From contig JANHCV010000013.1 of the NCBI GenBank assembly GCA_025594325.1, positions 1,054,001-1,118,000 of the forward strand: a stretch of 64,000 bases of DNA, read 5' to 3'. Below the pieces are notes generated by a model that had not been told where the DNA came from, did not search any database, and saw only the letters and a program-made list of their open reading frames with translations. The DNA comes from Blastocladiella emersonii ATCC 22665. Lineage: Eukaryota; Fungi; Blastocladiomycota. Positions 1 through 61,798 of this stretch are shown in pieces; position 1 is the first letter of the stretch; each line of letters starts with the position of its first letter. The position numbers were made by a program, and so were the translations under genes.

Positions 1-2
1 AC

Positions 3-773: not shown

Positions 774-801
774 GCTCCCCCTCGACCGGCAGTCGGGGGA
801 G

Positions 802-1717: not shown

Positions 1718-1859
1718 GCGCTGCACTTACTTCAAACACCTTGTCCTCAACAGTCGCACCCAGGTCGCTTTCGCCTTCTGGTCCTGCACCTCCGCCTACC
1801 GCATCTGCAACCGTGCCTCCACCACCTGCTCCGCCACCGGGTCTGGCGTTGATTGTCAC

Positions 1860-2305
1860 ATTTGGGCTTGCCTCATCATGTCACGTGAGTGGCTGAACGC
1901 GTCCCCTTGCCCTTTCTCCCTCGCGCGCCCTCGCTGAATCAAAGTCAACCCGCAACAAATATGTACTCTGTTGTTGCTTCTTCATGTGTCAATGACGTTT
2001 CTTGGTTGCTGTGCGACTTGAGCCGCATCCGCGCCAAGTTGGCGGTTCACCTTACGTGTTACCTTGTCACTGTCGCTCTGCGCAGCATGTTATGCGGCAA
2101 CAGCAGCAGCAGCGCGGCTGAGTTGAGTCGCAGCCCCTGATCCTTGCCTTGATCGTGTCGCGATGGAGATGAGCAACCATAGGTTGGGGCAGAAACGCGA
2201 CAGGAACGCAATATGTTTCGCTATGACGACTTCACCGTAGTCTGAGCTATCTCAACTCGTTTGTTTGTCGACTCTCAAGCGCAGCACTCGAGATTCATCT
2301 TGGCT
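1860..2305 (+). repeat. Dispersed duplicated module, copy 1 (copy 2 at 8679-9191)
   Basis: Colinear high similarity: ATTTGGGCTTGCCTCATCA..CATGTCACGTGAGTGGCTGAACGCGTCCCC..GCGATGGAGATGAGCAACCATA..CTCAAGCGCA. Each copy is followed directly by a minisatellite array. Confidence 0.9.
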
Positions 2306-2338
2306 TAAATCACTGTTGCGCGGCGCGGCGTCGCTCAG

Positions 2339-3063
2339 CGACGGAACGAGGCGACGCTGGCAATCAACGCAACGAGGCAACGCTGATCATGAACGCAACG
2401 AGGCGACGCTGATCATGAACGCAACGAGGCGACGCTGATTACGAACTCAACAAGGCGACGCTGGTCATTGACGCAACGAGGCGACGCTGGTCATTGACGC
2501 AACAAGGCGACGCTCACCAAGTCAACGCAACGAGGCGACGCTAGTCATCGACGCAACGAGCTGACGCTGATCATTAACGCAACAAGGCGACGTTGATCAC
2601 GACCCAACAAGGCGACGCTGATCACGACCCAACAACGCGATGCTGTTCATCGACACAACGAGGCGACGCTGAACATTGACGTAAGGAGGCGACGCTGACT
2701 ATCAACGCAACGAGGCAACGCTGATCCGCAACTTAACGAGGCAACGCTGAACATTGAAGTAACGAGGCGGCGCTGAACATTGACGTAACGAGGCGACGCT
2801 AGACATTCACGGAACGAGGCGACGCTGGACATCAACGCAGGAAGGCGACGCTGGTCATGGACGCAACAAGGCGGCGCTGATCATCGACCTGGCAAGGCGG
2901 CGCTGACTATCAACCCAATAAGGCGACGCTGGTCATCAACCCAACAAGACGACGCTGGTCATGGATGCAACGAGGCGACGCTGGTCATCTACGCAACGAG
3001 GCGACGCTGGTTATCAACCCAACAAGGCAAACCTGATCATCGACGCAACGAGGCGATGCTGAT
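2339..3063 (+). repeat. Minisatellite array, ~26-bp unit (core CAACGAGGCGACGCTG plus variable ~10-bp linker)
   Basis: Roughly 27 tandem units read directly, e.g. GTCATCGACG-CAACGAGGCGACGCTG. Confidence 0.95.
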
Positions 3064-3299
3064 CAACTACTCTTAGGGCCCGTTTGGTTCCGGGGTGAAT
3101 CAGGTGGATCAATCGATTTTACACGGTCCGGTGTTCACCCAGCTGAAACGTGGCATTTTCACCCCGTCGCGTTCATCGCGGCGTTTGGGTCGACCCCCGG
3201 ATGAGCTGAATGGAACCCTCGTCGCTGAATTGCCCGTCTGCTCGCCCCCGAAACCTTCAGGCTGTGCTTCCCGGCCTATATAAACCCTGTTTTCCTTCG

Positions 3300-3674
3300 T
3301 GGGGCAGCTCGACCACCACCGGCGAGTACTCGCACCTCGAGCAGGACGGCAAGGAGTCTGGTGACGTGGAAGGTGTCGATGGTCAAGACGACGCGGCCCC
3401 CGCCAGCAAGCGCAGCCGCACTTCGGACAGCAGCTCGCGTCGCCTCTCGGACTCGGAATTCCTCATGGGCATCAAGGAGGTGTTCCAGAGCGTCGCGACC
3501 GCCGACTCCAAGCCCGTTCTGACCGCCGCACTTGAATGGGTCCAGGACGCGTACAATGACAATGAAGAGTACCAGATCGACGTCGCCACCCGCCTGACCG
3601 AGGATCAAGCGCTTCGCGTCATGGCCGTGTCCGAATCGAAGCGCAAGCGCGTCCTCGAGTTTTTCATTCAGTAG
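3300..3674 (+). pseudogene. Harbinger accessory-protein remnant: C-terminal part only, Myb/SANT N-terminus apparently deleted
   Basis: A TATA-like CCTATATAAA at ~3275 is followed by coding-like sequence (PASKRSR NLS, helical EWVQDAY..VATRLTEDQALRVM..KRVLEFF) with no suitable ATG and no Myb domain. Position and orientation match Harbinger ORF2. Confidence 0.6.
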
Positions 3675-3987
3675 CTCTCTCGCACATGTCCCCCTCCCCT
3701 CGCGTTGCTTCCTGGCCTTGTTCTCGCCCATTTGTGTCCAATACATCTGGCTTTGTGTCCATCGTATCTTCAATCGTTACCCTTGGCTCGAAAATGACGC
3801 GACTCGTTGAGAAACGCGTGGTTCTCAAAGTGTCTCGCACGTCACGTGATTGATCGACGCGTCTCCACCGATGCGTTCTGACCTCAGCGACGCGTCAAAT
3901 CATCTGGAATCGCTTATCTAACGTTATAGTACTTGACAAATCAGTATATTACAGCATGCATGCGGGTACAACAATTATTTCGCGCCT

Positions 3988-5305
3988 TCAAAGACGGGTC
4001 CCACGAGCGGCCATGACGCGCCTGTACTCGGTCCAAAGAACATTTGCGACGCGGTTCCGAAGCGAGATACCGCGCTGACGAGCTCCGTCCAGCGAGGCCT
4101 CGAGGACAGCGGCCTCGTCGTCCTCCTCGTTCTCGTCGTCCAGGGGCTCGCGCCCACGCACTGGCGCCTCACGCGCCGCGTCCCGCGCGCGCCGGAGCTC
4201 CGTCTCGGCGTCGCGAAAGAAGGCGTCGCCGCCTTGGTTCCACTTGTTGATCATGTTGTGCAGCGTGCAGAGCGCGTACACAAGCTTGACTTGAGTCTTG
4301 ATTGGGTAGGCCGCGCCAATCGAGAGGACGCGGAACCGCTTCTTGAGCACGCCAAAGATATGCTCAATGGAGTTGCGGAGCGACGCGTGACGCAGATTGA
4401 AAAGCTCTTCGCGGTTCTTAACTCTACGTACGTTGGTGAAGCAGATGAGATGGCGCCAACGTGATGGTCATGGCAGTGAGAACGTACCCATCCTTGCCGC
4501 GGGCAAACTCGCGAAGATGATAGCGGGTACCGCTGAAGGGCACGATGATGGACGTGCGGTTTGCGTAGCCGCCGTCGGCGAGGTAGAAGCGGCCGGCGGG
4601 GATCTTGAACCCACGGGCGAAGGCGTCCGAGAGCACGCGCGAGTCGTGCGCCTTGCCCTCCCACCCTGCGAGAACGTAGGTGAAGTTCAAGTCAAAGTCG
4701 CAGGCAGCGAGGACATTTGAGGAGATGGTCCCCTTGCGGTTTCGGAACGAGTCGTGAAGCTTGGCGGGCACAACAAACGGGATGTGCGTTCCGTCAAGCG
4801 CGCCGACCGCGTTCTGGAACGGAGCGTATTTCGGGTCGTGGGCGATGCGCTCATGCACGGGCGTAGAATCGGACGGCTGGACAATGAACTCGGGCATCAG
4901 GCGGTACAGAGCGTCGAGCACCTGCTTCAGAACCCTGGACGCGGTCTCGCCAGAGATTTGGAACCGCTCCCTGAGGTTGCGGTTGGTGCTGCCCTCGCCG
5001 GCCATGACAAGAAAAACCATGAAGCGCGCCTCGACGGACAGCTCGCGGCCGTCGGTGAGAAGGCCACGGTCGCGGAACAGGCGGCAGATGGCCTTGAAGG
5101 TCTCGCGGGGCATACGGGCGATTTCCGAAAAACGCGTTTTGCTGTTGCACGTCAGCAGCTCTTGAACCCACGACTCGCCAGAAAGCGTGGACGTGCGGAT
5201 AGGCTCCCACGAGCGGCGCTCGTTGCGCGCAGCGAGACGTCGCAGGAGAGCGAGGGCGGCCGTGAGCATGAGGCCGCGCAGCTTGCGGTTGTATCTCTTG
5301 CCCAT
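3988..5305 (-). CDS. Harbinger DDE transposase (DDE_Tnp_4-like), 2 exons, ~417 aa, apparently intact
   Basis: Motifs GALDGTHIP, AGWEGKAHDSRVL, YLADGGY, FNLRHASLRNSIEHIFGVLKKRF. Removing the 64-nt GTACGT..ACGTAG intron (4424-4487) joins ORF 4424-5416 to ORF 3988-4350 in frame. Confidence 0.93.
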
Positions 5306-6352
5306 GTTGTTTGAGGGCTTGAGAACACGATGCGTGAGGTTAGGTGTTGATTCGTTGCAATAAGTGCGGCTGCAAAGAGGTGGGAAAGATTTTATTGCGG
5401 GGGGGGGGGGGTTCATCCAGCGGGGCGTTTGGTTCGCACGGCCACTGAGATGAACGGGGGTGAGGTGAAACGTGGCAACTTTTTCAGCTGATCCACCTGA
5501 TCTGAACCAAACGGGCCCTTACAAGCACTTTCCCAAATTCTTCGGCTTGCTCCCGGCCTGCCCATTGGCCCGTTTCAGCCGTGAGGCATTTTTTCGATTG
5601 GCGCGTTTCAGCCCGGCGGACCCGTTTTGATTGGCTCCCACCGGCCAATCCCCTTGCTCCTCTGCCACTCCCTCCCGCGCTTCCTATTCGTCAGAAAAGA
5701 GTCACCTGATCTCGCTGTCACTCCAGCTTTCCCGCAAGCGTCTGTTGCTCTTCCTCCTTGGCGCCCGCCTCAACGTCGCTCTCTTCGTGTCAGCGCTTCT
5801 CCCTGTCCATGCAGCTCTCACTACTGTTCTTGAAGGCGCTCTCCATGGTCGCCGCCTTCGCTCCCCTTTCAGCGCTCTCCCCTCCGACCACGGCCCACCC
5901 GCTCTCCCCTCCAGCGCTCTTCCCTTTGACCACGGCGCTGCCGCTCCCTCGCCCAGCGCTCTCCCCTCAGACCACGGCGCTGCTTCTGCCGCGCGCCTGC
6001 ACTCTTTGCCTGCCCGTACCTTGCACCATCAGCAGTCCCGTCTCCACGCGCGCTCTTCACTGTATCCGTTGGCCCGTCCCCGCCTCGCTCCTCTCCCTGC
6101 TCCCGTCCGTTGTGCACGACGTCGCTGCTCTCCCATCTCCATCTCCATCTCCCCAAGCCTCGCCGCTCCATCCATCTGCAACACCCGCCATCACTCGCGC
6201 CATCACGCAAGCCGCGGCGGCCATCGCGCGCCAGCCACTCGACCTGAGACGTTTCCTTTCGCTCTCCCTGCGTCACTACCACTCCCCTTCTTCGCACCGC
6301 ACGTATCCGACCATCGAATCGTTCGCATCCGCTCGCCCGTTGCTGTTCCCTA

Positions 6353-6840
6353 CTGCACTGGTGAGGTGCGCGAGCCCGCAGGGCGAGCTCCGCGATCAAG
6401 ACTAACGCGCACGTTGACTTGCGACCTCGCTAGCCGGGCTCGCCGCGGCGCGCTCTCTCTCACCTTCCGCACACGCGCAAGACCTGCTGCGTCGTCCGCT
6501 GCTGATCTTTCACTTCGCCGCACCCTGCACCGCTCGCGACCACCATCGCCACGTTCGCATCCGCTGGACCTGCGCTCGCCCGCGCCGACCCTTGGTCCGT
6601 TGCTATTTCCCCGCCGTTACTATCGCCCTCCATCCGCACCCTCCTTGGTCGACTCGGTGTCAATGTCTTCCGCTCGCTCGCTCGCCCCTCTCGCGCCATC
6701 CCGACACGGCCCGCGGCCGTTCCCTCCTGCACTGGTGAGGCGCGCGAGCCCGCAGGGCGAGCTCCGCGATCAAGACTAACGCGCACGTTGACTTGCGACC
6801 TCGCGTGAGGGGCGCGAGCCCGAAGGGCGAGCTCCGTGAT
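6353..6840 (+). repeat. 78-bp direct repeat (6353-6430, 6727-6804) plus a partial third copy (6805-6840)
   Basis: CTGCACTGGTGAGG(T/C)GCGCGAGCCCGCAGGGCGAGCTCCGCGATCAAGACTAACGCGCACGTTGACTTGCGACCTCGC, 1 mismatch between the two full copies. Confidence 0.9.
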
Positions 6841-7344
6841 GAAACCTCGCGAGCGCATCGACCCATGAGCTCGCTCGCCACGCTTGCCACCGCCCGCTCG
6901 CTCATCATCCACGAACTCCACGACTCGCTCTGCCGTTTGCTCCCGCCCCTCGAGTCCATGGTGCTTCGCCACGTCGGTTCCCGCTGCGTGTACTGACCGG
7001 CCGAATGTCTGCCGTTCCCCAATCAGCGCCGCCGGCCGGCCTTACTGCTACTCTTATGTAACTCGGCTACTTCCCCATCGCAACCCCACATCAGCGGCGG
7101 CGCATGTGGGGCATCTCACTGGAACTTTGGTGTACTTGGTGCCGTCGGCATAGCCTTTCACGCGGACCAAGTCTCGCGCCGGCTGTCTCTACTCACGCGT
7201 CGTCGCGATCCTGCAAGCGCGAATTGCTCGCTCCTCATTCACGTTCTCCATCAATGCATGACGCATCGGTTTCAGCAACTTGAAGCGGCTCACTGTCGCA
7301 TTCGCGAACGCACAGTTACTTCCCTCTCAGCACATTGTATTCGC

Positions 7345-8000
7345 GGAATCCACGGCGAGGATTGCGACCGCGCTCTCGCTTCCCTGCCGCGCGACTCGCT
7401 TGATCGCAGAAATGATCTCTTCCTGCTCCTCACGTCTCGAACTGAGCGATATAAGACATTCGGCGCTCTATCATCGTACCCTCCCGTCAGTAATTCTCCC
7501 AATCACACAGCGAATTCCCAGACGGCTACTTAGGAGGCCGGAAATCCGCACCTCCCTCAGAAGCACCAAAGGCCGTTGCAACGGCGCCCTCCCTCTACCC
7601 GCAGCCATACCGAACAGCAACTCCCTCAACCACGAGCTCACGACAGTCGACAGCGACCTTCCCGGTCCCCGCAGTAGTCAGGTTCCCCGCTGATTCGCTT
7701 CGCGATGGCCGCAGCCGCTCACACTTCCCTGCCGCGCGCCCGCCTGATCGCAGCAATGATCTCTTCCGCACCTCGCGTCTCTGACGGAACGGCTGCATAC
7801 GCTCGGCACCCTCCCAGTCTAAACTCAATTCAGCAACTCCCCCGATTACACTGCAAATTCCCAGACAGCGACTTGGGAGGCCGAACAGCTGCACCTCCTC
7901 CAAAAGCACCAACGGCCGACGCGACGGCACCCATCTGCTACTACTCGCAACCACACCAAACAGCAGGTCCCTCAACGGCGGGCTCGCAACAGTACGTAAC
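7345..8000 (+). repeat. Diverged tandem duplication, ~350-bp unit
   Basis: CTTCCCTGCCGCGCG..TGATCGCAG.AATGATCTCTTCC and ATTCCCAGAC.GC.ACTT.GGAGGCCG each occur twice, about 350 bp apart. Confidence 0.7.
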
Positions 8001-11704: not shown

Positions 11705-12078
11705 CGTGTCTGGTAGGTGTGGGCGGACGGAACGCGGTCAGATCGCGCCGAACGGGCCGATGATCGGGTTGACGGTTTGCGTTCGACGTTCACGCGGTGC
11801 GGCTGCCACTTCGCGAATGTGGCGCAGCGCGTCGGTGACGCGAGGGATTTCTCGAGTGCCGCATCTAACTCTCTAGGCCCGCGAAAATTTCGGGATCCGG
11901 TTTTCGATAAATGAAGCGCAAATTTAAGGGCGGGACGGCGCCCGACTCCCACGCGTGTAGCGGAGGAATCCCACGCGTCGCTCGCAGCCAATATTAAGCG
12001 AAAAATAGCGCTCTAATTTTCGTTAAAAACGCATATATAAATATTGACACGGACAAATCCCAAGCAGGATCTGAGCAA

Positions 12079-13420
12079 CTATCGCGGGACTTGAGGCTGG
12101 CGCGTTTCGAGGCCCGCGTCACGCCGCCACTGAGCGATCTGTTCAAAACCGAGCTTTTGAGCATATTGCTGGGCACAATGGAAGTGGTTTCTGCCAAGCG
12201 CGAGAGGCACGCCCGAGTCGAGCCACCACCAGAGTCGCGTAAGCACTGCCTCTTCGTCGTCCCCTTGCTCCACAGTCGACCAGCCGAGCGGGCACGCGAG
12301 CTCGTCGCGTGGGATGTTGGCCAGGAACCAATCAAGCACCGCGATTCGGTTCCGCTTGCTCGCGTAGCCGACCATGTAGTGCCAGAAATACTCGTAGGTA
12401 GAAATAGTTTCGTTGTTGGTGAACACGATGGAGATAAGTGGTTGAACTTCGTTTTGCCCAAGTACGCTGCTGCGATCGGTCGAGTTGTACTCGTACCCGT
12501 AGTCGCCGTCGTCGCCGGCAGATTGAATAGCGTCGACGCCGTACTGCTTGATCCCGTACGTCCTCCCGTCGCCTCCACGCGGACCGAGACACACGAGTCC
12601 GAAATCGGGCGCGTTACGATAGATCCAAGCAAGAAAGTCCACGTCCATCGCGTCGATTGCGTCGCAAGCGCGCTGGGCCCAGCCAGCTCCCTCAATGGTG
12701 CTGGCGAAGCAGGGAAACACATCGCAGCACTCGTCAAGAACCTTGATGCTCCTGCGATCCAGCGCACGTTGCGTCAATTCGTAGCGATAACCGTCCTCGG
12801 TCCACTCTTCAATGTCCAGCTTGAAGAGGCTCTTGAGTACTGCCACGTCTTCGCGGTTAAGTGCGTCGTAAACGGTGGATGCGTCGACCTCGATTTCGAG
12901 CTTGGACCCTGCCTGCCAATCAATGACTCTTGTGAGTCCCGCGTCCGCGGCTGCATCAATCATCCAAGTCGTGTAGAAGTCAGCGAGGTTATCAGGAATG
13001 AGCCAGTCAAACAAACCGGGCTCGGGGTGGTTTGAGTCCAGGGGCATATGATAGTGGACGTGTCGAAAGAGGTCCATCCGACTGGATCCACTGGTCGAGG
13101 AGATCCGCGCGGCTGCTGGCACATAGGAGCGCAAGGTACAGCGCGGCCTCATCATCCTCCGCTTTGTATAAATTTTGGCGATACTCGACAGCAGCGTCCG
13201 AAAGCTTTTCGTTTGGTCGTTTAAGCAGGTTCCACATGCGCCGATGCAGAGAGAATTTCAAGACGACGCGGCGCAGTCGCGACAGACTGGGGGCGACGTG
13301 AAGCAGCGGGAGCGGGTCCGCGTCCCGGCGGTCGTTCAGGACGACGCGAACTAGAATTTCCTCGATAATCTCTAGAGGTAGGCGTTGCATGATGTTTGAT
13401 CCGACTGCATCGTGTTCCAT
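12079..13420 (-). pseudogene. F-box-like + ankyrin-like repeat family member A, one frameshift near 13050
   Basis: MQRLPLEIIEEILV N-terminus (ORF 13007-13627) and C-terminal ORF 12079-13155 together align end to end with paralogs at 43186 and 44960. One indel is required, either real or a sequencing error. Confidence 0.8.
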
Positions 13421-15095
13421 GGTTGCTAGAGTGCGGTCCGTGGGAGCCCAAGCGCGATCGGCTCGAACCGGCTTGTGAAGCGCGGAAGACGGTGTGGCGC
13501 CACGATGCGTGTCTCTCACACGTTTTCCCGACGCGTCTCTCGCGTAGCTCGGGAACGTTCGCCCACCATGCCTCGCTCTTGGCCGAACGCAGTTGAAGCT
13601 TCCCTCTGGCGCCCATCCCACGTCCATTATTCGGTTTCATCGCACCAAGGGCCGCGGGTCTAGGCGGTCCGTGCGACCAGCCTGATCCTGTCGCAGGGCA
13701 AAAACTCCCTCGGGCGCAAGATGTTGGTCAAGATGCTGTTCGATTTCGCAGACAAAAGGCTGGCGCGTGCATCAGCAAGGTCGCCGCCGGCTTGGGTAAT
13801 CGCGGCGGCGTCGTCATTAGTTTCGTGCGCCGGCCGGTCGTGATCAAGGCGCTCGGCATCACGTCCGCGTTCAACGTCGCGTATGTGTGCGTGTCGCCGT
13901 TCCCGCTCAAATTAGCGCCGGCCGCGCAGCACGACGCCGTAATCAAGCTACGCAACGCGTTCGGGAAGCATGACAGCTGGTGCGACCGGTACGTTGGGTA
14001 CAGCTTCTCCATGATGAAGCGGGTCAGCGCACACAGCGAGACGATCACCGAGTACCTCGAGTTCTGCCACGCGGCCACGGCCGACCGAGCCGCGGGACGG
14101 CGGTCAGCACCACGCCGTCCGCGGGCGGCTCTCTACGCAACCCATCATCGGCCGGAGCAACGGGAGGTCAAGCGGGGCATTACTCGACCTGATGCGCGCA
14201 AGCAGGTCAACGGATTGTCCCGCCGTGGAGTTGGGCGAGCGCGTGCTGGGCTCCTTCGCCAAATGGGTCGCAACGCGGTCCGTAAAGGGCATGAGCGCGC
14301 TTGCGCGCGCCGCGTTACAGCTCAGAATCGTGGGTTTGCACGACTGAGCGAAAGAAGGTGGCGCTGCCGGGTCGGCGCATCGCCCACGTCGCCCGCGTCG
14401 CTGTGGAGACCGTTCCCGTCGGCGGCGGCGGTGGGGGATCCGCGTACCCGTGCTCCCGCTGCACGACCCGCAGCACGACCCGCCGTCGCTCGTGAGCGAG
14501 TCCGCGGACTCACCGACGAGCTCGACGAAGGCGGCGAGGCGCAAGGAGTCGCGCGGGCCCGGCGGTCGAGTCGGCCCTCGACGTCAACGACCCGTTCCCG
14601 CTGCCAACACAGCTACCGGTTCCCGTACACCTCCACGGGAACCAGCGTGAGTGGGCGGGAGTACCTGTGAAGCGCGCACGATGCGACACTCGGCTTCAGA
14701 ACCAATCTGTTGATCAGATCAGGCAGAGGCGGCGGCCGATTGATCTCGGCGGCCCGCTCCAACACAGCCAGCCGCCGCCGATGCCACCCGTGCCGTCGAT
14801 CGACTCAGCCTGGCTCAAGTCATCGTCCAATGCGTTCGGCCCACCTCGCGGCGGATCAGCCGGTGAGCACTCCGCGGGGGCACGAGAGCACCGGTCGATG
14901 ACCGTCGACCACGCGTCGCTCGCCAAGGCGCGGACGCCGCACCGAATCCTGGCTGCTCGCAGCGACCGGAGCGAAAAGAACACTCGAGGAGCATGTTGCA
15001 GCAAGTCGCAGTCAATCTTCATTCGTTTCGTTGACGGCGAAGCGGCCGGACGGGAGAGCGACGATCACCGGCCCGACACGAAGTTGATGAACATC

Positions 15096-17570
15096 GGGAA
15101 ATGGGGGGTCACTCCGCTGCGGTGGATCACGAAAATCTTCCTAGATCACTGTGATCTACGAAGATTTTAGCCCTGCGGAAATCTAGCCCCGCTCAACCAG
15201 TCCGGAGTGGTTCCGCTCGCGAAGATCTTGGCACCCGACATAGATCTACGAGTAATCTATGGCGCTCGACCACAAATCTAGGAAGTAGTCGAGCGCTTGC
15301 ACTCGCGCAGCGAACGACTTTGAGACAAAACTCGCGCGGCGCGTCCTTGACTCTCAAATCACAACATCGATCATCGCTGCCTTTGTCCTCCATGGTCGCG
15401 TTTGGAATAAATCAAGCAGTTCACTGGACTATCTCTCAGTCGTACATCAGCGCGTCGCACAGGCGGGTCGGGAGAACCGTGGTTCAAGTGAGCAAACAGG
15501 GAGCACCACACATGCAGCGTGACCAACGAAGTGGGAAGGGGAGAGGGCCAGGGGCATCGATTCACTCGAGGCGGTGTGCAGGATCGGCGTCAAGGAACGT
15601 GAAAATGGAGCTGTTGAAGAGCTGTACGGGCACGACAGGGATCAAGGTTGCGGGTGCCCGCCAGTGTGCCCTCAAGCGGGAGCGAGGTCGTAAGCGGGCG
15701 GGATCACGACGTTGTGGAGCCGCCAACAATCCTGCAGGACGGATCAGCGAGTTCCGGCTCGCGCATCTCACCACGTAGCAGGTCGGGCAGAGCAGCGACG
15801 GCCAGTATCCGCAGCTGTTTCGAGTTCGTTCGACCACGGAACCACGCGGCGAGGGAGTTGCAGCGTGTCAGTAATGAGATCTTCAGACCTGCGTTGTGTA
15901 TGCTTGACAAGAGGGGAGGAGGCATGGTCCGACGCGACGCGGCGAAGCTGTCAAGGGAGGCGGCGGTCAAGCGCACGTGAGGATCGGCGGCGTTTGTTTT
16001 GGGCGAAGTCCTTCGCTCGGTCGCCACCGCCCACCGCCCACCCTTGCCGCTGCCGACTTCCTCTCTCCTCCCCCGCCCCTCGTCCTTCCCCCCAACTCCC
16101 CTACGACGCATCCAACTCCATGCACTTGCTCCAGGACTGCATCGGGCACATCGCCATGGCCTGCGCCGGGTACGAGCCAGACCCTCCCTGCGCCGTCGTG
16201 TGCACGCCACCTCGCCACCTCGCACGGCCGCCACCAACTGCTGCCTCACGCCGCGCCGCTGACCGTCGCACCGGTTTGCCCTCACTGACGCCTCTCTCGT
16301 GCTCCCGCTGTCCAGGTCCCGCCGCGGCTGATACTGCCCGCCCAAGCCGGCCGACGCCACCCTTCGCCCCCCGGACGCTCTGAACCTCGCTGGCGTCGGC
16401 GACGTGAACGCTCTCGTCGAACCTGCCGTCCTATCCTTCCTGGGGCTCGAGACGGCCTGCGGTCGCATGCTCATGGCGCCGCGTATCGTCGCCGCCATCG
16501 AGATCCCGCACAACGTGGCGCGCGCGCGGCGACGGCGCCCAGCAACCGCAAGTCCGAGGTGCTGCTCAACCTCACGTTCGACTGGAACCGCAGGGCAACG
16601 ACGTATGTTTGCGATCGTCCGCTTCGGGCTGCTTCCCAACCAGCGATCTGACCCGGACCGCCCCGCCTATAGAACCTACGCCCGCGGCATCGTCAAGCTG
16701 ATTGCCCATGGCACCCGCTCGCGCACCCTAGGCGACCTGTCCCCCTCCGAGTCGTGCGTGTGTTTTCGCGTGTCTGGTCGCCCACGCTAACGCCACCGCT
16801 GGCCGACGTAGCAAAGCTGCCCGGGCCGCACCTGTTCGCCATCGTGGATCGACTCGCACCTGATCGCACGCTCGTCGACATGGTGTACTTCATCGAGCTG
16901 GTACGCGTCGCGCACGATCCTGACTCGCTTCGTAGCTCACGCCCCGACGTGTCTGTGTAGTTTGCTCCCGTGGTCCAGTCGTACGTGCAGGGGTCGGCGG
17001 CGCCCATCGTGGATGTCGACATGTTCCGCCGCAGCTACTTCCACTAGCTGGTCGCGAGCATCGAGCGTCGCCGGGCCGCTCACCCGTTTGTCCGAATGAT
17101 CACGGAGGAGGTCGTGCGCCGGTCGTTCACCAAGTCCACCCACGCTGCCGCTGCCGCTGCCGCTGCGAACGCAGCCTCGGCGGCGGGTGCCCGAGGCGCG
17201 AGTCCGGACGGAGTCGCGCTGGATAGCGACGACGACGACGACGCGTAGATTTGATGCACAATACAGATCTGTTTCTCACTCATCGAACTCTCCCGTTGTG
17301 TGCTGAGACCTCTCGCTTGGCGAAGATCGCTTGAAAATCTCACAGATCTCCTCAGCGGCGGGGAATCTACGTTCGCTGCGAAGATCTATCGGTCTGAACG
17401 GAGTCAAGCTCGGCTGGACGGGAGGGATAGATCTATGGTGAGATCTATAGAAAACATAGGTTTGCAGTGGATTTCTACCTAGATCTTCCCCAGCTATTAT
17501 GGCCCCCGAAACCCTAAGATCTATGAGAGATCTAGCTAGATCTCTTTGAAATCTTAACCCCCAATTTCCC
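15096..17570. mobile_element. Non-autonomous TIR element, MULE-like, carrying a decayed gene
   Basis: TIR GGGAAAT(G/T)GGGGGT (13/14). Flanks GATGAACATC (15086-15095) and GATGAACAGC (17571-17580) give a 10-bp TSD with 1 mismatch. Dense AGATCT(A)/GATCTA motifs occur only in the two subterminal ~200-300 bp. No transposase. Confidence 0.75.
16340..17248 (+). pseudogene. Unidentified decayed protein-coding sequence inside the MULE-like element
   Basis: Protein-like, C/G-ending-codon segments in shifting frames (LNLAGVGDVNALVEPAVLSFL, EVLLNLTFDW, LFAIVDRLAPDRTLVDMVYFIELVRV), ending in an acidic tail LDSDDDDDA*. Contains in-frame TAG codons. Confidence 0.4.
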
Positions 17571-20500
17571 GATGAACAGCGCAGGACCTCAACGGCGCCC
17601 AAGAACGCGAGCGCTGTCCGTGGTGCTTCGGCCGCAAGCGAAGCGGCTTCGAAGCCGGTCAGGAAGGCGACATGAGAGCGACTCGCCCGGTGCCCGCGAG
17701 CGGGGCCCCGGGTTCCCACGCGACGCGACGCGCCACGCACAAGGGAGAGGAACAACGTGCGCGTTGCGTCCTCGGGCATCGAGCAGCAGTTGCGGAGCTC
17801 GTCGGTCCAAGGTCTCTAGCTTGAACTCATGCAGCAAAATGAATCGCGACCCACTGATGACGCGGTGGAGTGCGGGGGCAAGTGGCCCGCGGGAGGCCGA
17901 GGGCGACGGATCTCAGCGAGGATCCGGTCGTCAGGCTCGGTCGGCCGTGAGCGCCACGACGATGCAGGGTTGTGGATGCGAGTGGATCTGCGATGCGAGC
18001 GCGAGAGCAGCGGCGATCGGGCGCGTTGGCGAGGCGAATGAAGGCCCGCGGCGACCTGTCGGGGCCGGGCTTCCTCGCGTGGCTGCGTCATCGTCTCGGA
18101 GACGGCGCCTCTCAGGCTCGCGAGAGCAGATGAAGTACGCCGTAAGCCGGCGAGGAGCGCCCCGAGCGCCCCGAGGCCGGCAGACCGTCGGTGCGGCCAT
18201 GGGAGCACCGTTGCGGGAAGTCGCGCATGCGTATGCGGTCCATGATACCTCAAGGCGCCTGAGAACGCGCCGGCGGGGTGAGAGCTCGAGGAGAGGTGGC
18301 CGCCATCAGAAGGAGGCGTGGGAGTTCGCTCCTCCGCGACGAGCGTGGTGATGCAGTGTGGCGCAACGCGTCAACCGCGCGCTCTTCCGGTCCGCGGCGA
18401 CGCAGTGTGCGCAACCAGCTGAAGTGTCGACGTATGCGAGTTGGTGAAAGCTCTTGCACTACTTCTTCGGCCAACGCGAGGCGAAAAGTCGTCACGTCGG
18501 CGCGTCATATGAAAGTCACGCTTGTCTCGCGGCCGCGGGAGACGCGACGTTTTCACGCGCGCGCTTCCAGAAACGCGTCGCTGCGACGCGTTGAGCAACG
18601 CTGTCGTGATACAACTATCGACTCCTTGCGATGCCATCGACTTCCTCTTCTACCAAGGACCTCAACGACAGCACCTGCAACTACTCGACGCGCTCGCGGC
18701 TCTCATCCACGTACGCGCACGTCGATGGGTGCGGGCGGACCGCTGGTTCATCGCGCGACTGGGCGCGGCCTCGGGCTCCGTGTAGCGCGACTGCTCGTCG
18801 CACGACGAGCTGCGCGGGAAGGCATCATTGCCGTCGCGACACCGCGCACTTCATGGAATTGTATCTCCGGCGGTCGAGTTCATGCTGGTGCGCGTACCGC
18901 CGAACGCGCCGCTCGTCGTCAACGCTAACGTGCGCGTCCGCTCGTGTATGTCGGCCGTGCGGCAACGCTCGGCCTAACCGTCTCGCACGTCACGTTCTCG
19001 GCTATGCTCGGCATATCTGCTCCGGTACGACAAGAACACGCCGCGAGACAACTACTGACGCGACGCACGTCTGTCCAGGCAGCGGCGACGACGTCAAGGA
19101 GATTCTCGACTGCACTGGCCGAGCCCGCTACATGCAACTGAGCCCGCCAGCCTCGTGTCCGGTTCCTCATGAACCACCCAGCTCAAGAACGGTACGTGTC
19201 TTCGACCGCTTCGCTCGCACCCTATACCCGCCGTATCGCGTCGTGCTCGCCGTCCAGATCGCCTCGCGCGAGCAAGTACTCGAGCGCAGGCTCGCACGAA
19301 TCGGGCTCGACGCGTCCTTTGACAACCTCATCACGCTTTACGGGTACCCTGCGAGACGAGATGCAGGTCAAGCTCGATGTGGATCGCGCACCAGCGGCTG
19401 CTCAGCTTTGGTACGCGTGTATTCGAGGCCAGACACTTCACTCGCACTGACCTGGCTCGGCTTTCGTGTGGGAGCCGCTTCATTCTCCTTTCCTCCCGGC
19501 CGCACTGGCGGCGACCGTTCCGCGACCATGCACCGCGCTACGCCGTCTTGGCGAGTTCCCGCAGCGACCTCGCTTCTTCCCGGTACGTGTCCATGACCCC
19601 GTGGCGGTCGGCATGTCTTTCTTGCTTACTCGCGACCGATCGTGTAGTCGACGCTGTGCAGCTCTGCTCGCGCGTGTGCGAGTCCACCAACCTGGCCCGA
19701 GCTGCCCAACTACTGCTACACGCCGCTTTGGCACGTCGTGTCGACCACGCTCACGACCACGACCAGCAGACGGCATGGCGAACCGTGCGGGGCGAGACCA
19801 AGACGACGGCGTATATCGACTGGCATGGTACGTGTCTTTTTGTGTCTGTGGCCATGGGAGTGCCGTCAATGCTCACTCACGTCTTGCTGCTGGCACACTT
19901 TCCCAGATCCTCTCCATGTCTTTCGGTTGAGCGAAGCGGTGGCTCCACAACAACACACAACGACCGAGAACCAGTACACGTGATGTTCAAGGGCGGCAGC
20001 ATCGGACATGGGTCAGCTCGCACTCGTCAAGAAGCTCGGCACGCTCGCTCAACGACTCGTTCGCCGATCGAGATCCAGGGCGCGGCCATGACGACGGCCG
20101 TCATGGCTCGCTCGGGCCGCAGATCGTCTGGCAAGCAGCAGCAATCCGTCGTCATCCATCCCCGAGCTCACGCACGCCGAGTTCATGGCGAGCGTGTGGT
20201 ATCTGTCGGTACGCGAAAAGTCGCCGCCGTCCGCAGAGTCATGAAGCGTCGCTCAATCGTAGGACAAATTACAACCATCGGCACTACACGCACCGCCCAC
20301 CTCACGGTTCTCGTCACTGTCAAAGCTCAACACTCTCTGCTTCGACATCAAGCGGCAGAGTGCCTCGGCGTCTGTCGCTCCAGAACTGCAACGACCGCCG
20401 TGACATCTTGACCACCGCGGTCCTCGACGCGTACCACCAGCTTAAGTATGCGGCGAGCGGCGCGTGATGTCGTAGGTCATGGCCAGCCTGTGACGTGTCG

Positions 20501-54168: not shown

Positions 54169-54786
54169 GGCGGTTGAGTAATCAAAAAAGCTACTTCCAC
54201 CGCCGATCGACATGTTGATGATGTCCATGCCGTCCTTGAAGGCGGCGGTCATGCCCTGTAGGATGAGCTCGGTCGAGGTGCCGCCCTTGCACCCGAAGAT
54301 GCGGTACGCGCCGAGCGTCACCTCGGGCGCCGACCCGTGATCTGGTTGTCGTTGCCGCCGATGATGCCGGTGACGTGCGTGCCGTGGCCGGCGAGCGCGC
54401 AGTCCATGGGGTCGTTGTCGGGCTTGGGCAATGACGCGGTTTGCCCTCTCTCAGATGTTCACGAACGATAGACTTTATAACCGTTGCATGTTGTTCCAGT
54501 CGGGTTCATGGGCGTTACATGGCAGTGCAAGCTTGTTGCGGAGAGGGAGACGTGTTGACAGAGGTGACAGCAGATCATGTCGAGCGAGGCGCCGCGGCAC
54601 AAAGCGTGGGCGGCGAACGACGCAGGGGGGCGACAACGGCCATCCGCGTGCCATAAAGTCGAGTGGCTGCCACTCCTTTCAACCCGTCCCCCACGCGTCT
54701 CGCTCGCGCGCGGCGGTCAGCTTACCCTCCCGTCGACAGCTCCTTCCGCTTCGCTCATCGTGCATGAACGATTCCCACTCTATGCA

Positions 54787-55566
54787 ATGAAATGGTCACT
54801 CCATGAACATGTGATGTTGGAGAAGAAGTTCCGCGAACTTATGCTCGAATTCATGACCCCGACTGACATCACGCGCGTCATGACGTTCCGGCGACGCGTC
54901 GCCCGCGAGGAGGCGCAGATGTTCCGAGAGATCCTGCGCCAGTCGACTACCGCGCGAATCGAGCACTGCCACCGCCGCGCCCTCGCCCTCGCTGGCCCGC
55001 AGGACCATCCAACCGCTTGGGATGCGGCGCGGGGTGCGGCGCTCGGCACGTTTGCGCGCGCCGAGTCGGACCTGGAGCGTAACCTCGCTAGCGCCATCCA
55101 GGAGGTGAACGCGCGGTACGAGCTGCACATGCACAAGGCCGACTGGTACTGGGGGTACCGCGTGTGGGACGAGCCGACGCGCTACTGGCTCGCGTCCATG
55201 CAGGAGTACGAGACGGGTGTGGTCGAGAAAGTCGCGAGGGTGGTGGAACGTCTCCACGCGACGGACGTTTGCACCTCGAGCCCCGACGTGCCGAGTTTTG
55301 TCCCGCTCATCTCCTACTCGGAGCTACCCTCGAGTCCATCGACTTCTTCTGCCGAGCTCGTCCAAGGGCTGGGCTCCGGCCCGGGCACAACGCCCGCACC
55401 CGCGCCGGCGTACGGTCTCCATGCGCCCATCGACCTCGCTGGCGCCACGCACAGCCTCAACGCGCCCGTCCACCTGCCCGCTGCGGCTCCCGGGTTCCAC
55501 ACGCACGCCACTCAACCTGCCGTCGCGGTCGGGTTTGGTGTCCCAACTGTACGAAGCAGCTCGTGA
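54787..55566 (+). CDS. Accessory ORF of unknown function inside the P-like element, 259 aa
   Basis: First ATG inside the TIR. Helical, charged N-terminal ~160 aa with an aromatic patch KADWYWGYRVWDEPTRYW, then a P/S/A-rich tail. Strong C/G third-position bias. Confidence 0.75.
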   Translation: MKWSLHEHVMLEKKFRELMLEFMTPTDITRVMTFRRRVAREEAQMFREILRQSTTARIEHCHRRALALAGPQDHPTAWDAARGAALGTFARAESDLERNLASAIQEVNARYELHMHKADWYWGYRVWDEPTRYWLASMQEYETGVVEKVARVVERLHATDVCTSSPDVPSFVPLISYSELPSSPSTSSAELVQGLGSGPGTTPAPAPAYGLHAPIDLAGATHSLNAPVHLPAAAPGFHTHATQPAVAVGFGVPTVRSSS

Positions 55567-55588
55567 TGATGGCTTGAGTGGAGCGCTG

Positions 55589-58500
55589 ATGGAGGAGATA
55601 CTCTTGAGTAGTAGCACGCCAACCGTCAAACCCATGTACTGGGTTGGCGGTTTGCAGGCTTGGCTGGGAAAGACGAGCATGCCCGAGCCCAAGTGCGCTG
55701 ATGACCAGCTCAAGATCTACTGTACCAATACCAAATGGAAACCCACCGTGCACTTGCGCGACCACCTTCTGGCGGGACTGGAAACACAACTCGCACGTCG
55801 AGCGAAACCCACATCCAGGTACACTCCTGAGCTAAGGCTACTTGCGGCTCGGACTGTACGGTGGTTGAATGCTTCCAACAGGTTCGTATCTCGCGCTTCC
55901 GCTGAACAGTGTAGATTTAGGTTCCGTCGCGATTCGAAGCGAGACTGACAAGTTGACGCGCCGACGTTCGATCTGTAGCGATCCACCGCGGCTTCCTGAA
56001 CCAGTACATCACCCTACACCATCCGCATCTCGTGCACCATCGCCATCTCCAACGGGCGAGGACATGGCCGTCAACCCGCCGCCGCTCGCCGCCGCAGCTG
56101 AGGACATGGACATGGACCTTGATCCGCTGGTGCTCGAGCCAATCTCGCGCACCCAAACCTCGTACTTGAGTCCCGACGAGGCCGACAAGAAGATGACCGA
56201 CCAAGCGACCAACATCAAGACGCTCAAGGAGAAGGTGCTCAAGCTCGAGTCGCAGCTTGCCGCCTGCAACAAGGAGAACAACGCGCTGCGCGAGGAGCTC
56301 ACCATGCTCCGCTCTTTGACGTGCGGCGGGTCCGAGGACGTGCAGTCGCTCGCCATTCTCGCCGTGCAGATCAAGGACAAGGAGGGCATCGAGCTCCTCA
56401 TCCAGCTGGCCACGGCGCTGTCCAAGGACAGCGTGCTCCCCCGCAAGCAGTTCATGTTCCTACATATTCGCGACCAAGTCCGCGGCGTTCTCGGCATCAC
56501 GATCACGTTCTACGATCCCGCGACGATCGAGGCGTGGTGCTACTTCCACGCCGAGGGCGGCGGCCACAAGGCGTTCCGGTACCTGCGCGGGCCTGGAAAG
56601 GCCGTGCCCGCCGGCCTGACTGACGGCGTCCGTCACAACGCACACGGCACCCCGCACCTCATCAACCTGTTCATCCCGGACACGCGCACAGTGCAGCGCA
56701 AGGCCAAGCAGGACCTGGACAAGAAGAACCCGATCGGGCTCCAGTACGGCCGCATCGAGGACGTGGCCAAGTACGTGACGGAGCAGAAGGCCAAGGGCAA
56801 CATCGTGGAAGTGTGTGTCGCGTTCGACGGCACGGACAAGCCCGACGAGCCGCGTCACTATGAGGACGGCATCGTCCAAGGCGGCCCAGAGTTTGGTAAC
56901 CTCGACATGGCGTTCAAGCTTCTAGCGGAACCCGGTGCGGCTCGCTTCGTGCGTTTTTGTCGCTCGATACGCGCGCCCTGACGTCCGGATCCGCGTGTAG
57001 TCCACGACGAGCGCTTCAAGGACGCGTCCGACCCCAAGTTCGCGCTCCCCGTTGAGCTGATCGACAAGCTCAAGGTCGACGAGCTCAACGACGCGTGCGA
57101 TGCGGCCGAGCAGGCCGTGTCCGAGTTCCACGCCGCGCCAGCCGCAACAGCAGCAGCCGCGGTCGGGTCGGAGAGCGGCGGCGCTGCACCAGCACCGGCC
57201 ACCGCCCTCCCAGGTTTCAACGAGAAGAACAAGCTTTGCAAGTGCGCGCAGCAGGTCATCGACACGCTGCGCTACCTCTGCGAGCGCGCGAACGTATACT
57301 CGGAGGCGCTAGCTGAAAAAGAGGAGAGGAAGCGGAGCAAGATCGAGAGCCCCGAGACCTTGGACGCCTCCAAGGAGAAGGCCAAGGTGGCCCTCGCCAA
57401 GCTGAGCGCCAAGCGCAGCCGTGTCCATATGTACGCTCAACAGGTTTGTGGTCGGCGATCATGACCGCTTGCCTTTGCTGTGTCTGATTAGGAACATTTC
57501 CTGGCTCGAGCTCCACGCGCAGCAGCTCGAACAGCAGGTGGCCATGGTCATGACTGAGCAGGGCCCGGTACAGCGCCTGACCAAGGTTGCCCTTGATCTG
57601 CTGCAGCTCATCATCGAGGCGCTCGACGGTGCCCACGACGCGCTCGTGGCCGTCACCGCTGCGGCGACGAAAATTCTCGTCTTCACCGTGACCGACCACG
57701 CGCTCAACAACCTGCAGTTCGTGGTCGCTCGCCTTCTCGTCGCATCCGAGTCCGCCAGCATCATTCTACCCGTACTGCGGTACATCAACTACGAGCTCAA
57801 GAAAGCTGGTATCTCGGTGGCCGCCCAAGCGTACGTTCTCCTCGTCCCACATCAGCGGCGCTTGCTGACAGCGAGTTTGCTTGTATAGGAGCGACGGCTC
57901 GAACGCCAACTGCCTCATGGGTCGCGGACCTGGCGCGGCGTGCTACCCGCAGATGGTTCGTGACGCGCAAGCGCAGTGGAAGAACATGGAGGAAGATGCG
58001 CTGCGCGAGTGGTTCAACTGCAACGTCGATTCGGCCATGTCGCTGCTCAACAACTCGAGCGACGTCAAGGCCAAGTGGAATGAGCACTACTTCACGACCT
58101 GGAAGAAGGACGTGCACATCAAGGCTATCATTGAGGTCCGCGACAAGCTGAGACGGAGCCCTTCCGCGACGGTCACACAGGCGGCGTTCACGAGCGTGCA
58201 GACGGTGCTGTGGATCAACGCGCGCCTGAAGCTCAACCCCAAGCACGACGTACGGCGAGTACCATGGGTTCCTGTGATTCGAGTCGGGCTCGACGGTCAG
58301 CTGCACAAGATCGTGACGGTGCACGACCGCGACCACGCGTTCAAGCGCGCCGCGATCCACTTCAGCGAGAGCTCCATTGAGGGCAAGACGGACCACACGC
58401 TGATCGACAAGATCATCAAGCTGTTCCCCGAGGTGCTCGGCCCAAAGTGGAAGAAACGCGATCGACAAAACGTTCCCGAGGCGCTAAGGCTGTTCTCAAT

Positions 58501-59248
58501 GGAGTGCATCCACAAGGTGCGCGAGGCGGCCGGACCCAACAACGAAAAAGGTACTGGACTCTGCATCATCCTCAACACCTGCCGCAAGCTCCAGGACGCG
58601 ATGAACAGCTCCAACCTCGGCATTGAGCAGCGGCACCAGCTCGTCGACGAGGCCGGCAGCATCTTCTACCTCGCGTTCCTCGAGAAGTGGTGTTTGGCCG
58701 ACGGCGGGTCGCCGACCAAGTACGTGTCCGGCATCCCCGCCTGCACCATCACGGCCCTGTTCAGCATCATCGGCGCGTTCAAGGCCTTTGACGAGCGCTA
58801 CGCTCGCTCCAACCCAGAGCCGAACGCCAAGCCGTGGCGCCAGCGCTTCCTCACCACCGACATGGTCGAGGCGTACTTCTCGGGCTGCCGCAACGCGTGG
58901 GGCCAGGACGGGCGCGCCAAGTCCAACACGCTGCCGCGCATCGTGATCCTGCTCGCCATGAGCAAGGCCGACCACTCGGCCGAGCAGCTCGCGAAGCCGT
59001 TTGACGAGCGCGGCGGGTTCGTCGGGTCCTCGTCGCGGCACTCGATGATCGGCGGGTACAAGCGCAACACGGGCGTGTGGGGGACGATGCGCGGCGAGGG
59101 ATGGGCACGCGGCACTCCGATCGCTCCCGCCGCCCCCGCCGACCGCCCGCGCAAGCGCCCAGCAGACGAAGTCGAGGGCGGCATCGAGTCGAGACCGAGC
59201 AACCGCGGCTTCCACCGCAACGGCACTCATGTGGGTCCCCAGTCGTAG
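55589..59248 (+). CDS. P-element-like DDE transposase, 5 predicted exons, ~1125 aa, apparently intact
   Basis: GT-AG introns 55882-55978 (least certain), 56935-57000, 57431-57491 and 57831-57888 join five ORF pieces in frame (3378 nt). Motifs: AFRYLR..IPDTRTVQR, VAFDGT (D1 at 56826), SVAAQASDGSNAN (D2 at 57893, created by splicing), HDRDHAFK (D(2)H), RQNVPEALRLFS, LTTDMVEAYFSGCR (E at 58868). Confidence 0.88.
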
Positions 59249-59611
59249 GCACAGTCGGCGAGATCATGCCGGGCGCAGCTTCGCGCCGCGCGCCGAGTCC
59301 AACGGGTCACGGGCCCGCGAGGGAAGTCAGAGATCGGGCAGTTGCAGCAAGAGAGAACATTTTTGTAATGCATAGTTATCATGTTTATTGCGATCCACGG
59401 GCTTGCCGAGGTCGAAGAGAGAGAGAAAAGCGGCCGAGGCGATGTGGCGGGTGGCGCAAGCGGAGGCCTGAGAGGCGGATTGGAGTGGCAGTCTATGGCA
59501 CGCGTCAGCTTCCCTGTGTCGATCATCGCTTCCACAGCGCGCGCGGTTGTCGCCCCCCTGCGAACGACGCGTCATGTTGCGGCTCCCCGGACGCTCGCTA
59601 CTACTTCATCC

Positions 59612-61798
59612 ATGAAGCATTCTCGAATGAATAACTCCATGCATTTGACCGAGGAACCACCCGCCACTCAGAATTTGAGGTTTAGCGACCTCCCGAATGA
59701 GGTGGCCGTTGTCGTGGTGCAGCTTGCCGAGGCCCATCCTGTCCTTCCGGCTGCCTCGCGCACACTGCTTGATCTCGCCCGCGACCACGCGGTCCTCTCC
59801 GCTTGGACGACGCGGGAGCTCGTCTGGCTTGGATCGTTCGTGGGCACTACTCAGGCCAGCGGCTCCGAGCCGTCTCAAAGCACCAACAGCAGACTGCTTA
59901 ATGGCGAAACCATCTTCGCCAACGCTTTCTTGGAACTGCAGAATCAATACTTGGCCGCATTCTCTGCCGTGAGCACCATACAAGACAACGAAACGTTCAA
60001 CTCGCGAGTCGACGCCTTGTTCCGCGCCGTCTTTTCTTGCGCGAGCTCACGCGCTCACGCTCAGCTTTCTGGCAAGAGCACCAAACAGCTTACCTCACTG
60101 CTGGATCATGTCATCAAGAAGTTGTTGGAGCGAGTTCGGTCCGAATCCCCGTATGGGTGCCCGGTCCCCACCATGATTCGGCTTCTCACAGCTGCAGTCA
60201 TGCTCGGAAATCCCTCTTTTATCGCTCACTCGCTTACGGTGATCAAGTCGGAGTGGCCGCAGCTCCTCGCGGTGCAACTGACGTGGTTCGAATGGCGCAC
60301 CCTTGGACTGTTCAACCCAATCTGCCTCACGGATGTTGGAAAGATCGAAGAGTCCTTTGAGACGGCAGAGGGGCTGTCTTCCTTCATGCCGCGCTTGGCC
60401 GACTTTCTCGCTTTCATTGCGCTCATATTTTGGAGTGCCTCTCCGCTCAAGCTCTTGTTTACTTCTCAGACGGTTCCTACGAACCAAGCCGCGATCCTTG
60501 CATTTGCAGCGCTTGAACCCATCACCCGCTTCATGTTCGGGGATTTCTACGAAAGAACTCCCGCGGACGAGGACATTACGGGTGTGATGGAGATTATTCT
60601 CAATTCTAACTGCGCAGTTCCGAACAAGCTCTTGTCCGCGGCCGTGGACGGGATCGGCGAGCACGACGCGACCGTACTTGCTGATCTCGTTTCGCGTTTC
60701 TCGGAAGTGCTGGGCGGGAGCTTGACCCCAGAGCAGCTCCGTGGCGCAAGCGACTCAATCGGCGAATGGTTTACACGCCAGCAGTATGCGGATAAACGCT
60801 TTGTGCTTCCAATGGAGGTCTTGAGCCCGCTCATCGCTCACGATTTTCTGCAAGTTCCCGAGCTTGGCAAAATCGTTGCCTGTGCGGTTCAAACTCGTTC
60901 GTCCAACGAATTCGACGCGCTTCGCACACTGGTCTCGCCGACCGTGTGGGATGACATTCTCATCGCGGGTACGCTGTCGCCCAGCTTAGTAGTGGGGATG
61001 CGCTGACCTTTGAGTGATGAATTAGCGTTTGCAAGCAAGCGCCTAATAGACGATGCGGCTTATGTCAACATGAAGCACCTTGTGCGCCAGACTTCGTCCT
61101 CCAACTTGATCCCGCGGATCGGCGAAACCTTTCTGACGAGGGACAACGGCTTCCAATCCGGCGTGTTCATTCGTACTTTCTTTGATGGCAAGCGCAGCTC
61201 GGACAACGAGTTGCTCGAGGTCTTTTCGATAACGATGCACCACCTTTCCGCCACACCTCCCAAGTACTATTCGATTTCCTGGAGCACGACTTGCGCGATC
61301 ACATTCCTTGCTGAGACCACGTTCTCCCGGCCGCTACTGAGGGACCGCGCCATCGGGCATGTTCGCGAGACAGGCGCCGCAGGGCATCTTGTTTGCGCCA
61401 TGGCCGCGGTCCGCTGTCATTATCGTCACAACTACGAAATGAAGCTCTCAAAATATCTCACTGAGTGCCCACGCTGCTCGCCGACCTACGCAAGCTCCTG
61501 GCGTGACATGTTTACCTTTCTTGTTGCAGCCATTCCTAGCGACACGGAGCTCGCTCAGCTCCTCTCAGCTTTCATTGACTCGGTTTGGCGCAAGAAAGTG
61601 GTTGAAGTTGAGGAAGATGCGGTACTCGATCAAATCATTGGCTGCAGCGAATGTTCGACGCAACAACTTGACAACGGGCTGTTTCAATTCGCGTTCAACA
61701 CCCTTGTTCAGCGCGACGCAGCTACTCGTCCTATGTTTCAAATTCCTGGCCCCGGGTCCAACTCGCTTCTCCGAGCCGCGCACGGATCATTCGATTGA
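59612..61798 (+). pseudogene. F-box-like N-terminus helical protein E, one in-frame TGA at 61004-61006
   Basis: RFSDLPNEVAVVVVQLA. ORF 59381-61006 and ORF 61010-61798 are in the same frame, separated only by TGA-CCT. The first part is homologous to 62671-64000. Confidence 0.7.

Follow-up and report, generated by a model that had tools for sequence, protein, structure and literature searches.

Within a 64-kb stretch of DNA from the water mould-like fungus Blastocladiella emersonii ATCC 22665 (assembly GCA_025594325.1), referred to throughout as the window, positions 54623-59560 are occupied by an element of 4,938 bp that is in all probability a class II cut-and-paste transposon, being the sole full-length and potentially autonomous copy of its family and encoding a DDE transposase of the P/THAP9 lineage. 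The kinship of this transposase with the P element of the fruit fly is very remote, and the element enlarges a known family without founding a new kind. The relationship is supported by three independent lines of evidence, namely a recurring match to the Pfam family TNP-like_RNaseH_N (PF21787), the feature neighbours of the protein in the ESM-Atlas, and a D(2)H motif combined with a signature of residue offsets.

Element ends and target-site duplication

The element is bounded by a perfect 15-bp terminal inverted repeat (TIR), CAGGGGGGCGACAAC, which lies at 54623-54637 on the forward strand and as its exact reverse complement at 59546-59560, as described in an earlier note on this DNA; these are the only two exact matches to CAGGGGGGCGACAAC in the window. 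The 9-mer CGAACGACG stands at 54614-54622 and again at 59561-59569, directly against the TIR on either side. Moving the boundary by a single base leaves mismatched 8-mers, and the target-site duplication (TSD) of this copy is therefore 9 bp, the 8-bp reading being a misfit as previously stated.

Two subterminal motifs are repeated in inverted orientation at the opposite end. The 11-mer CGCGTGCCATA (motif 1, 54645-54655, forward strand) recurs at 59494-59504, and the 10-mer CTGCCACTCC (motif 2, 54667-54676, forward strand) at 59482-59491, in colinear arrangement, so that the right-end copies of motifs 2 and 1 together span 59482-59504 on the reverse strand. The distance from motif 1 to the TIR is unequal, at 7 nt on the left and 41 nt on the right. 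By analogy with the P element, whose transposase-binding sites are likewise asymmetric and whose arrangement the spacing seen here resembles (PMC7776569), both CGCGTGCCATA and CTGCCACTCC may serve as transposase-binding sites, with motif 1 as a candidate in its own right.

Gene model and predicted transposase

Removal in silico of four GT..AG introns, all on the forward strand, at 55882-55978, 56935-57000 (or 56896-57000), 57431-57491 and 57831-57888, restores a single open frame of 1125 amino acids (aa), as checked by script, with the alternative intron-2 donor at 56896 giving a product of 1112 aa. The earlier claim of four introns and a protein of about 1125 aa with three catalytic residues (D381, D675 and E1000) is borne out to this extent, the splicing itself being predicted. 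At intron 3 the frame is preserved by the donor GTACGC (57431), not by GTTTGT (57444). A CTGAC/CTGAT-like branch motif can be read by eye in all four introns, and the NCBI ab initio models P0002 and P0007, which belong to other copies, contain the same introns 2 (with the long-exon donor), 3 and 4. The genome paper of B. emersonii reports annotation by gene predictors and leaves transposons unmentioned (PMC9730499).

Exon 1 (55589-55881) is predicted to encode an N-terminal domain devoid of THAP or conserved zinc ligands and without a Pfam match; it shares 31% aa identity with the N-terminus of a divergent relative elsewhere in the genome (L001, see below), in which one of its two cysteines is conserved. 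Exon 2 (55979-56934) would supply a coiled coil (approximately aa 170-211), for which weak coiled-coil-type Pfam matches were found, a helix-turn-helix (HTH)-like region extending from RYLRG (aa 298) to PDTRT (aa 331), and the first catalytic aspartate, D381 (56826-56828), within FDGTD (aa 380). Exon 3 (57001-57430) corresponds to a helical insert between β1 and β2/3 of the RNase H domain, modelled as long helices in a low-confidence structure, and exon 4 (57492-57830) to the end of this insert followed by β2-β3-α1-β4. The first part of exon 5 (57889-59248) carries D675 (57893-57895) in SDGSNAN (aa 674), a second insert, and the D(2)H motif from D819 to H822 (58325-58336). The rest comprises a predicted all-alpha insertion domain marked by V868, S876, D909, N912 and D997, together with QNVPEALRLFS (aa 866), TDMVEAYFS (aa 996) and the catalytic glutamate E1000 (58868-58870), before a C-terminal tail and the stop codon. 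Every motif of the P-superfamily set that had been listed beforehand was thereby located in the spliced product.

The catalytic triad of D381 (FD[GE]TD), D675 ([SF]DG) and E1000 (VE.[FY]FS) is kept in relatives sharing only 20-33% identity, the FD[GE]TD motif being retained in the two Logan contigs L006 and L007. The RNase H domain is enlarged at two places, by about 220 aa after β1 and about 110 aa after β4, giving a D381-D675 spacing of 294 aa against 73 in Drosophila P and a D2-D(2)H spacing of 144 aa against 36. The helical insert of some 200 aa proposed earlier between the first two aspartates is borne out as an expansion; the second insert, between D2 and D(2)H, had been overlooked.

Upstream of exon 1, an open frame of 259 aa, designated ORF (open reading frame) A, lies at 54787-55566 on the forward strand and is retained in all deletion derivatives of the element. 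It has no Pfam match. The NCBI models P0007 and P0008 join it to the transposase in deletion derivatives. Splicing from ORF A to exon 1 is conceivable by 38 in-frame GT-AG combinations, none of which is favoured by the sequence. No A-like sequence was detected in the rest of the L001 locus, in which the sole match to ORF A belongs to a patch of the window family. ORF A could be a separate accessory gene or an upstream exon.

Relationship to P and THAP9 transposases

Of the Pfam P models (PF21787, PF21788, PF21789, PF12017 and PF12596), PF21787 alone gives matches, and no other Pfam family of any kind recurs; it is the top or only match in four members, with E-values of 0.00075 in L007, 0.0041 in L006, 0.0072 in P0007:590-720 (a 98-99% identical copy of window exons 4-5) and 0.088 in L001. 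The matches cover the same profile positions, 64-132 (65-132 in P0007:590-720), which correspond to β2 to β4 and the second aspartate.

The second line of evidence comes from two ESM-Atlas queries, P0007:240-1150 and the L007 ORF, that share only about 20-25% identity with one another. The feature neighbours of both are all P/THAP9 clusters, with scores of 0.93-0.94 and 191-199 of 256 features in common. Once the P families are set aside, no named cluster exceeds 0.78. The affinity to Mutator-like elements (MULEs) and hAT elements, raised in the earlier note as a check, is lower still, at 0.63 for Mutator (88 shared features) and 0.59 for hAT. A hAT assignment is further disfavoured by the lack of any match to PF05699, the model of the C-terminal hAT dimerisation domain, and by a TSD of 9 bp rather than 8.

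The third line concerns residues. In P, the D(2)H motif directly follows β5 at the start of the insertion domain, as one form of a [C/D](2)H motif (PMC8230255); in the window protein it reads DRDH (819-822), with DPSH in P0004 and P0006 and, read by eye, DPAH in P0003. The offsets from V868 to S876, D909, N912, D997 and E1000 are 8, 41, 44, 129 and 132, respectively, and those from V401 to S409, D444, N447, D528 and E531 in Drosophila P are 8, 43, 46, 127 and 130, as computed from the residue numbers published for P, with its GTP-binding residues, in PMC7776569 and PMC8230255. The predicted insertion domain measures 181 aa as compared with 192 in P, and its V, S, D..N and D-3 positions lie at corresponding offsets. 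By analogy, the transposase might also use GTP.

Copies, deletion derivatives and mobility

Two further complete insertions were found in B. emersonii, at L002 (4709-9104, TSD AGCGCGGCG) and L004 (3745-8156, TSD GGCCCTGCT), along with a fourth, truncated copy at L005. Tabulation of the TSD lengths, as had been advised, gave 9 bp and not 8 in L002 and L004, so that all three complete insertions, the window copy included, possess perfect 9-bp TSDs, each different in sequence. Compared with the window copy, the others show 96-99% identity (a difference of 1-4%), and the ratio of non-synonymous to synonymous differences (pN/pS) between copies is 0.42-0.66. The coding frame of the L002 copy holds a stop.

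Window positions 55545-56298 are missing from L002, L004 and L005, with about 230 bp in their place. As the three copies share this one deletion at different loci, a deletion derivative must have spread to several of them by transposition. In public DNA contigs, which show zero differences from the window flanks, 55544-56311 has the depth of the single-copy flank, with 3-7x deeper coverage at the element ends. This leaves the window copy, alone in having all five exons, as the single full-length member of the family, which numbers roughly 4-7 copies. The earlier picture, in which introns conceal a P-related family that lacks THAP and moved recently, agrees with the TSDs, the identity between copies and the spread of the deletion derivative, and the window element may still be active at present.

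Additional internal-deletion joints were observed in DNA contigs from the same sample, at 55223>55262, 55410>57182, 55446>56174 and 57398>58625, as well as a joint at 58548/58553>58637 with filler letters. The pattern of these joints is that expected for interrupted gap repair after excision.

As regards genomic setting, insertions occur in short intergenic gaps by genes. About 50 bp separate the window copy from a long ORF downstream of it (59381-61006), and the L004 copy lies 171 bp after a gene with a Mitofilin domain (PF09731) and 211 bp before one with an Amidase domain (PF01425); this sample of insertion sites (the window copy and L004:3574-8367) is too small to call a target preference.

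Relatives

Relatives are very sparse: a phmmer comparison of exon 5 with 1.84 billion representative proteins gave six matches, consisting of the B. emersonii copies, the ENA metagenome contig L003, the short protein P0005, L006 and L007; no annotated P/THAP9, Allomyces or rust protein was among the six. Word-indexed homologue searches retrieved only the B. emersonii copies plus P0004, and two metagenome locus scans yielded no relatives. L006 and L007 are two contigs of one Logan run, with a GC content of 31-36%. L006 (Logan SRR7244338, GC 36%) contains a complete 3.35-kb element at 31-3380, the TIRs of which begin CAGGGGGTGCTC and the transposase of which is split into three ORF pieces; the L007 end is like the L006 end. 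The 9-mers flanking the L006 element, ATTGCAACC and ATTGTTGAA, do not match one another and are uninformative as to its TSD.

A second, divergent B. emersonii family, with 31-40% aa identity to the window family, is represented in L001. Its member begins CAGGGGGGTGG; as in the window protein, a coiled coil and then an HTH-like region follow the N-terminal domain. The 5'-CAGGGGG terminus is common to the window element, L006, L007 and this L001 relative, and has been kept although members share only about 25% protein identity.

The L001 locus itself (L001:1-19517, in JANHCV010000004.1, 553378-574582) contains an inverted duplication whose arms, at 1-7685 and 11833-19517, are 100% identical and at least 7,685 bp long, and a 4.1-kb spacer made up of the divergent relative and patches of the window family. 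The apparent long TIRs of the relative belong to this 7.7-kb perfect inverted duplication, host flanks included, and were accordingly rejected as a source of a TSD. The duplication could be due to aberrant transposition, a hairpin-type rearrangement or an assembly artefact. The NCBI "AAA ATPase midasin" model P0001 (L001:10001-11205) in the same locus is a chimera, its first 63 or so residues being a 98% identical transposase fragment.

Among the ESM-Atlas neighbours, unnamed Basidiomycota clusters of 619-1019 aa that lack any Pfam match reach scores equal to those of canonical P transposases, and their models superpose on P-type clusters. They may represent a wider fungal P-like group that is as yet unannotated.

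Weighing of the evidence

Several observations weigh against the assignment of the window element to the P/THAP9 lineage as an intact and active transposon. The PF21787 scores of 13.6-20.3 bits fall below the gathering score of 24.6. PF21788, PF21789 and PF12017 gave zero matches, and neither the six ORF pieces nor the gene models contain a P-family, MULE, hAT or KDZ domain at curated thresholds. Neither phmmer nor hmmsearch retrieved the P transposase from the PDB sequences, whether single pieces or family profiles served as queries. AlphaFold2 models of P0007:240-1150 and the L007 ORF, built from 7-8-row alignments, reached a mean predicted local distance difference test (pLDDT) of only 38.9 and 43.1, respectively, and Foldseek against the PDB with the better of these low-confidence (pLDDT <=43.1) models produced only noise. 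Within the putative GTP site, Lys400 of P is replaced by Asn in the window protein and the equivalent of D444 is ambiguous, with Asn912, not Asp909, standing opposite the conserved W-D of the relatives upon alignment. In neither exon 1 nor ORF A was a THAP domain matched at E<=1, in line with the earlier note, which saw none. The four-intron splicing is a prediction from sequence, and no joint skipping 54623-59560, as an empty-site allele would provide, occurs in the public DNA contigs.

The shortfall in the Pfam P models would also suit a superfamily-level sister lineage of P, sharing with it a common ancestor and the insertion domain and standing outside the clade of P, 1360, Galileo, THAP9 and the rust and Allomyces P elements. 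Such a placement also draws on the replacement of THAP by an N-terminal domain of its own and the two large inserts, on the mere six phmmer proteins among 1.84 billion, none of them annotated as P/THAP9 or from Allomyces, and on CAGGGGG termini conserved inside the group. It is nevertheless considered unlikely, given feature neighbours that belong to canonical P clusters (0.93-0.94) and a signature spacing nearly equal to that of Drosophila P. The choice between a member of P and its sister lineage is one of rank, not of kind; the earlier wording of a "P-related family or sister group" is supported as to the relationship with P, and a member and a sister group look alike where curated thresholds are missed. 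A far less probable affiliation, hardly to be entertained, is with the MULEs, for which a 9-bp TSD is typical: the 9-bp TSDs of all three copies fall inside the MULE range of 9-11 bp, and fungal MuDR-type elements with 9-bp TSDs exist (PMC3164196). Against it, neither the MULE nor the Transposase_mut models gave a match at E<=1-10, the motif after β5 is D(2)H rather than C(2)H, and the best Mutator cluster trails P by 0.63 with 88 shared features to 0.93 with 199.

Whether the element is alive is a separate matter. It might be a dead relic, that is, an extinct family, a fortuitous open frame or a product of wrongly predicted introns, and this deserves more credence than either of the foregoing alternatives while still being somewhat improbable. 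The want of an empty site in public DNA contigs is in keeping with it, as are the differences of 1-4% between copies, by which the insertions are not brand new, and the stop already present in L002. A 3.4-kb open frame over five exons in a genome of 62% GC would, on the other hand, need four exact frame restorations; pN/pS lies below 1, and three copies have TSDs and TIRs without a mismatch. The reading of the window element as a potentially autonomous P-type transposon is preferred.

Proposed mechanism and significance

Under the preferred reading of a P/THAP9-type cut-and-paste element, the transposase would begin with an N-terminal domain peculiar to the lineage where P has THAP, followed by a coiled coil, an HTH-like region and a split RNase H domain (D381, D675, E1000); the stretch from D(2)H to the catalytic glutamate would form an all-helical insertion domain of P type. 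The coiled coil is envisaged to mediate dimerisation, the dimer then binding the asymmetrically spaced subterminal motifs. Cleavage would take place at the conserved 5'-CAGGGGG termini and integration by target cuts staggered by 9 bp, and internally deleted copies arising from interrupted gap repair could be mobilised in trans.

It is also suggested, tentatively and as rather less probable than its contrary, that the window family, the second B. emersonii family, the metagenome contig, the L006 and L007 elements of an AT-rich eukaryote and perhaps also the Basidiomycota clusters constitute an ancient THAP-less sister branch of P/THAP9 with its own end-recognition domain, CAGGGGG termini and a 9-bp stagger. 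If this were true, the P-type (GTP-binding-like) insertion domain would predate the animal-fungal split, and a likely autonomous copy would be at hand for testing.

P-type transposons are best known from animals, and the fungal cases are scattered. Here, a full-length and apparently intact copy is found in a culturable model blastoclad with non-autonomous partners in the same genome, in a lineage that standard domain models miss at curated thresholds and whose genes are labelled by NCBI as "hypothetical protein", with one fragment inside a "midasin" model. The element reveals no new transposition mechanism. It does offer a natural experiment, in the form of a P-type transposase without THAP and with a changed GTP-site lysine, and could help to decide if a dependence on GTP and the target stagger were already traits of the ancestral P.

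Comparison with known P elements

The nearest parallels are the P element transposase of Drosophila melanogaster and the human and zebrafish THAP9, all of the P superfamily (structure PDB 6P5A). Like these, the B. emersonii element is a TIR element of cut-and-paste type whose transposase gene has several exons and whose protein is predicted to place a coiled coil and an HTH-like region ahead of a split RNase H domain. Also in common are the DDE triad with D(2)H, a predicted all-helical insertion domain that spans about 180-190 aa from D(2)H to the glutamate, with near-identical V/S/D..N/D..E spacing, the asymmetric subterminal motifs and the internally deleted derivatives. The B. emersonii element differs from them in lacking THAP, in a TSD of 9 rather than 8 bp, in a 15-bp TIR beginning CAGGGGG, in the lengthened D1-D2 (294 vs 73 aa) and D2-D(2)H (144 vs 36 aa) intervals, in the change of Lys400 to Asn, and in a sequence similarity under Pfam thresholds.

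The 9-bp TSD had been regarded in the earlier note as lying outside the P range, which is contradicted by the repleta group of Drosophila: a P copy of D. buzzatii has a 9-bp TSD, and its miniature inverted-repeat transposable element (MITE) BuT5 has TSDs of 8 or 9 bp, with 9 bp in 13 of 17 copies (PMC3698922). It is solely through this case that 9 bp comes within the published P range, which is otherwise 7-8 bp. Repleta-group P and BuT5 thus resemble the B. emersonii family in belonging to the P superfamily, in their 9-bp TSDs and in a non-autonomous partner mobilised in trans; they differ in their insect host, their THAP domain, their 3-bp TIRs and their mixed 8/9-bp TSDs, as against 9 bp in all three B. 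emersonii insertions.

Among fungi, the Repbase entries P-1_MLP and P-2_MLP of Melampsora, P-1_PSt of Puccinia and the Allomyces P are, like the B. emersonii element, of P type. The Allomyces P element reportedly goes back to Yuan and Wessler in 2011. The rust elements differ from the present one in their 8-bp TSD and in being recognised by Pfam P models. The view that P is rarely reported in fungi therefore needs qualification, with P elements on record from the blastoclad Allomyces and from Pucciniales (PMC5751038), including Melampsora with its 8-bp TSDs (PMC3164196). Because the D. buzzatii and Allomyces records exist, neither a 9-bp TSD nor a P element in a blastoclad is unprecedented; what is new is the lineage, which is THAP-less, bears inserts in its RNase H domain, is missed by standard models, ends in CAGGGGG and includes a likely autonomous copy.

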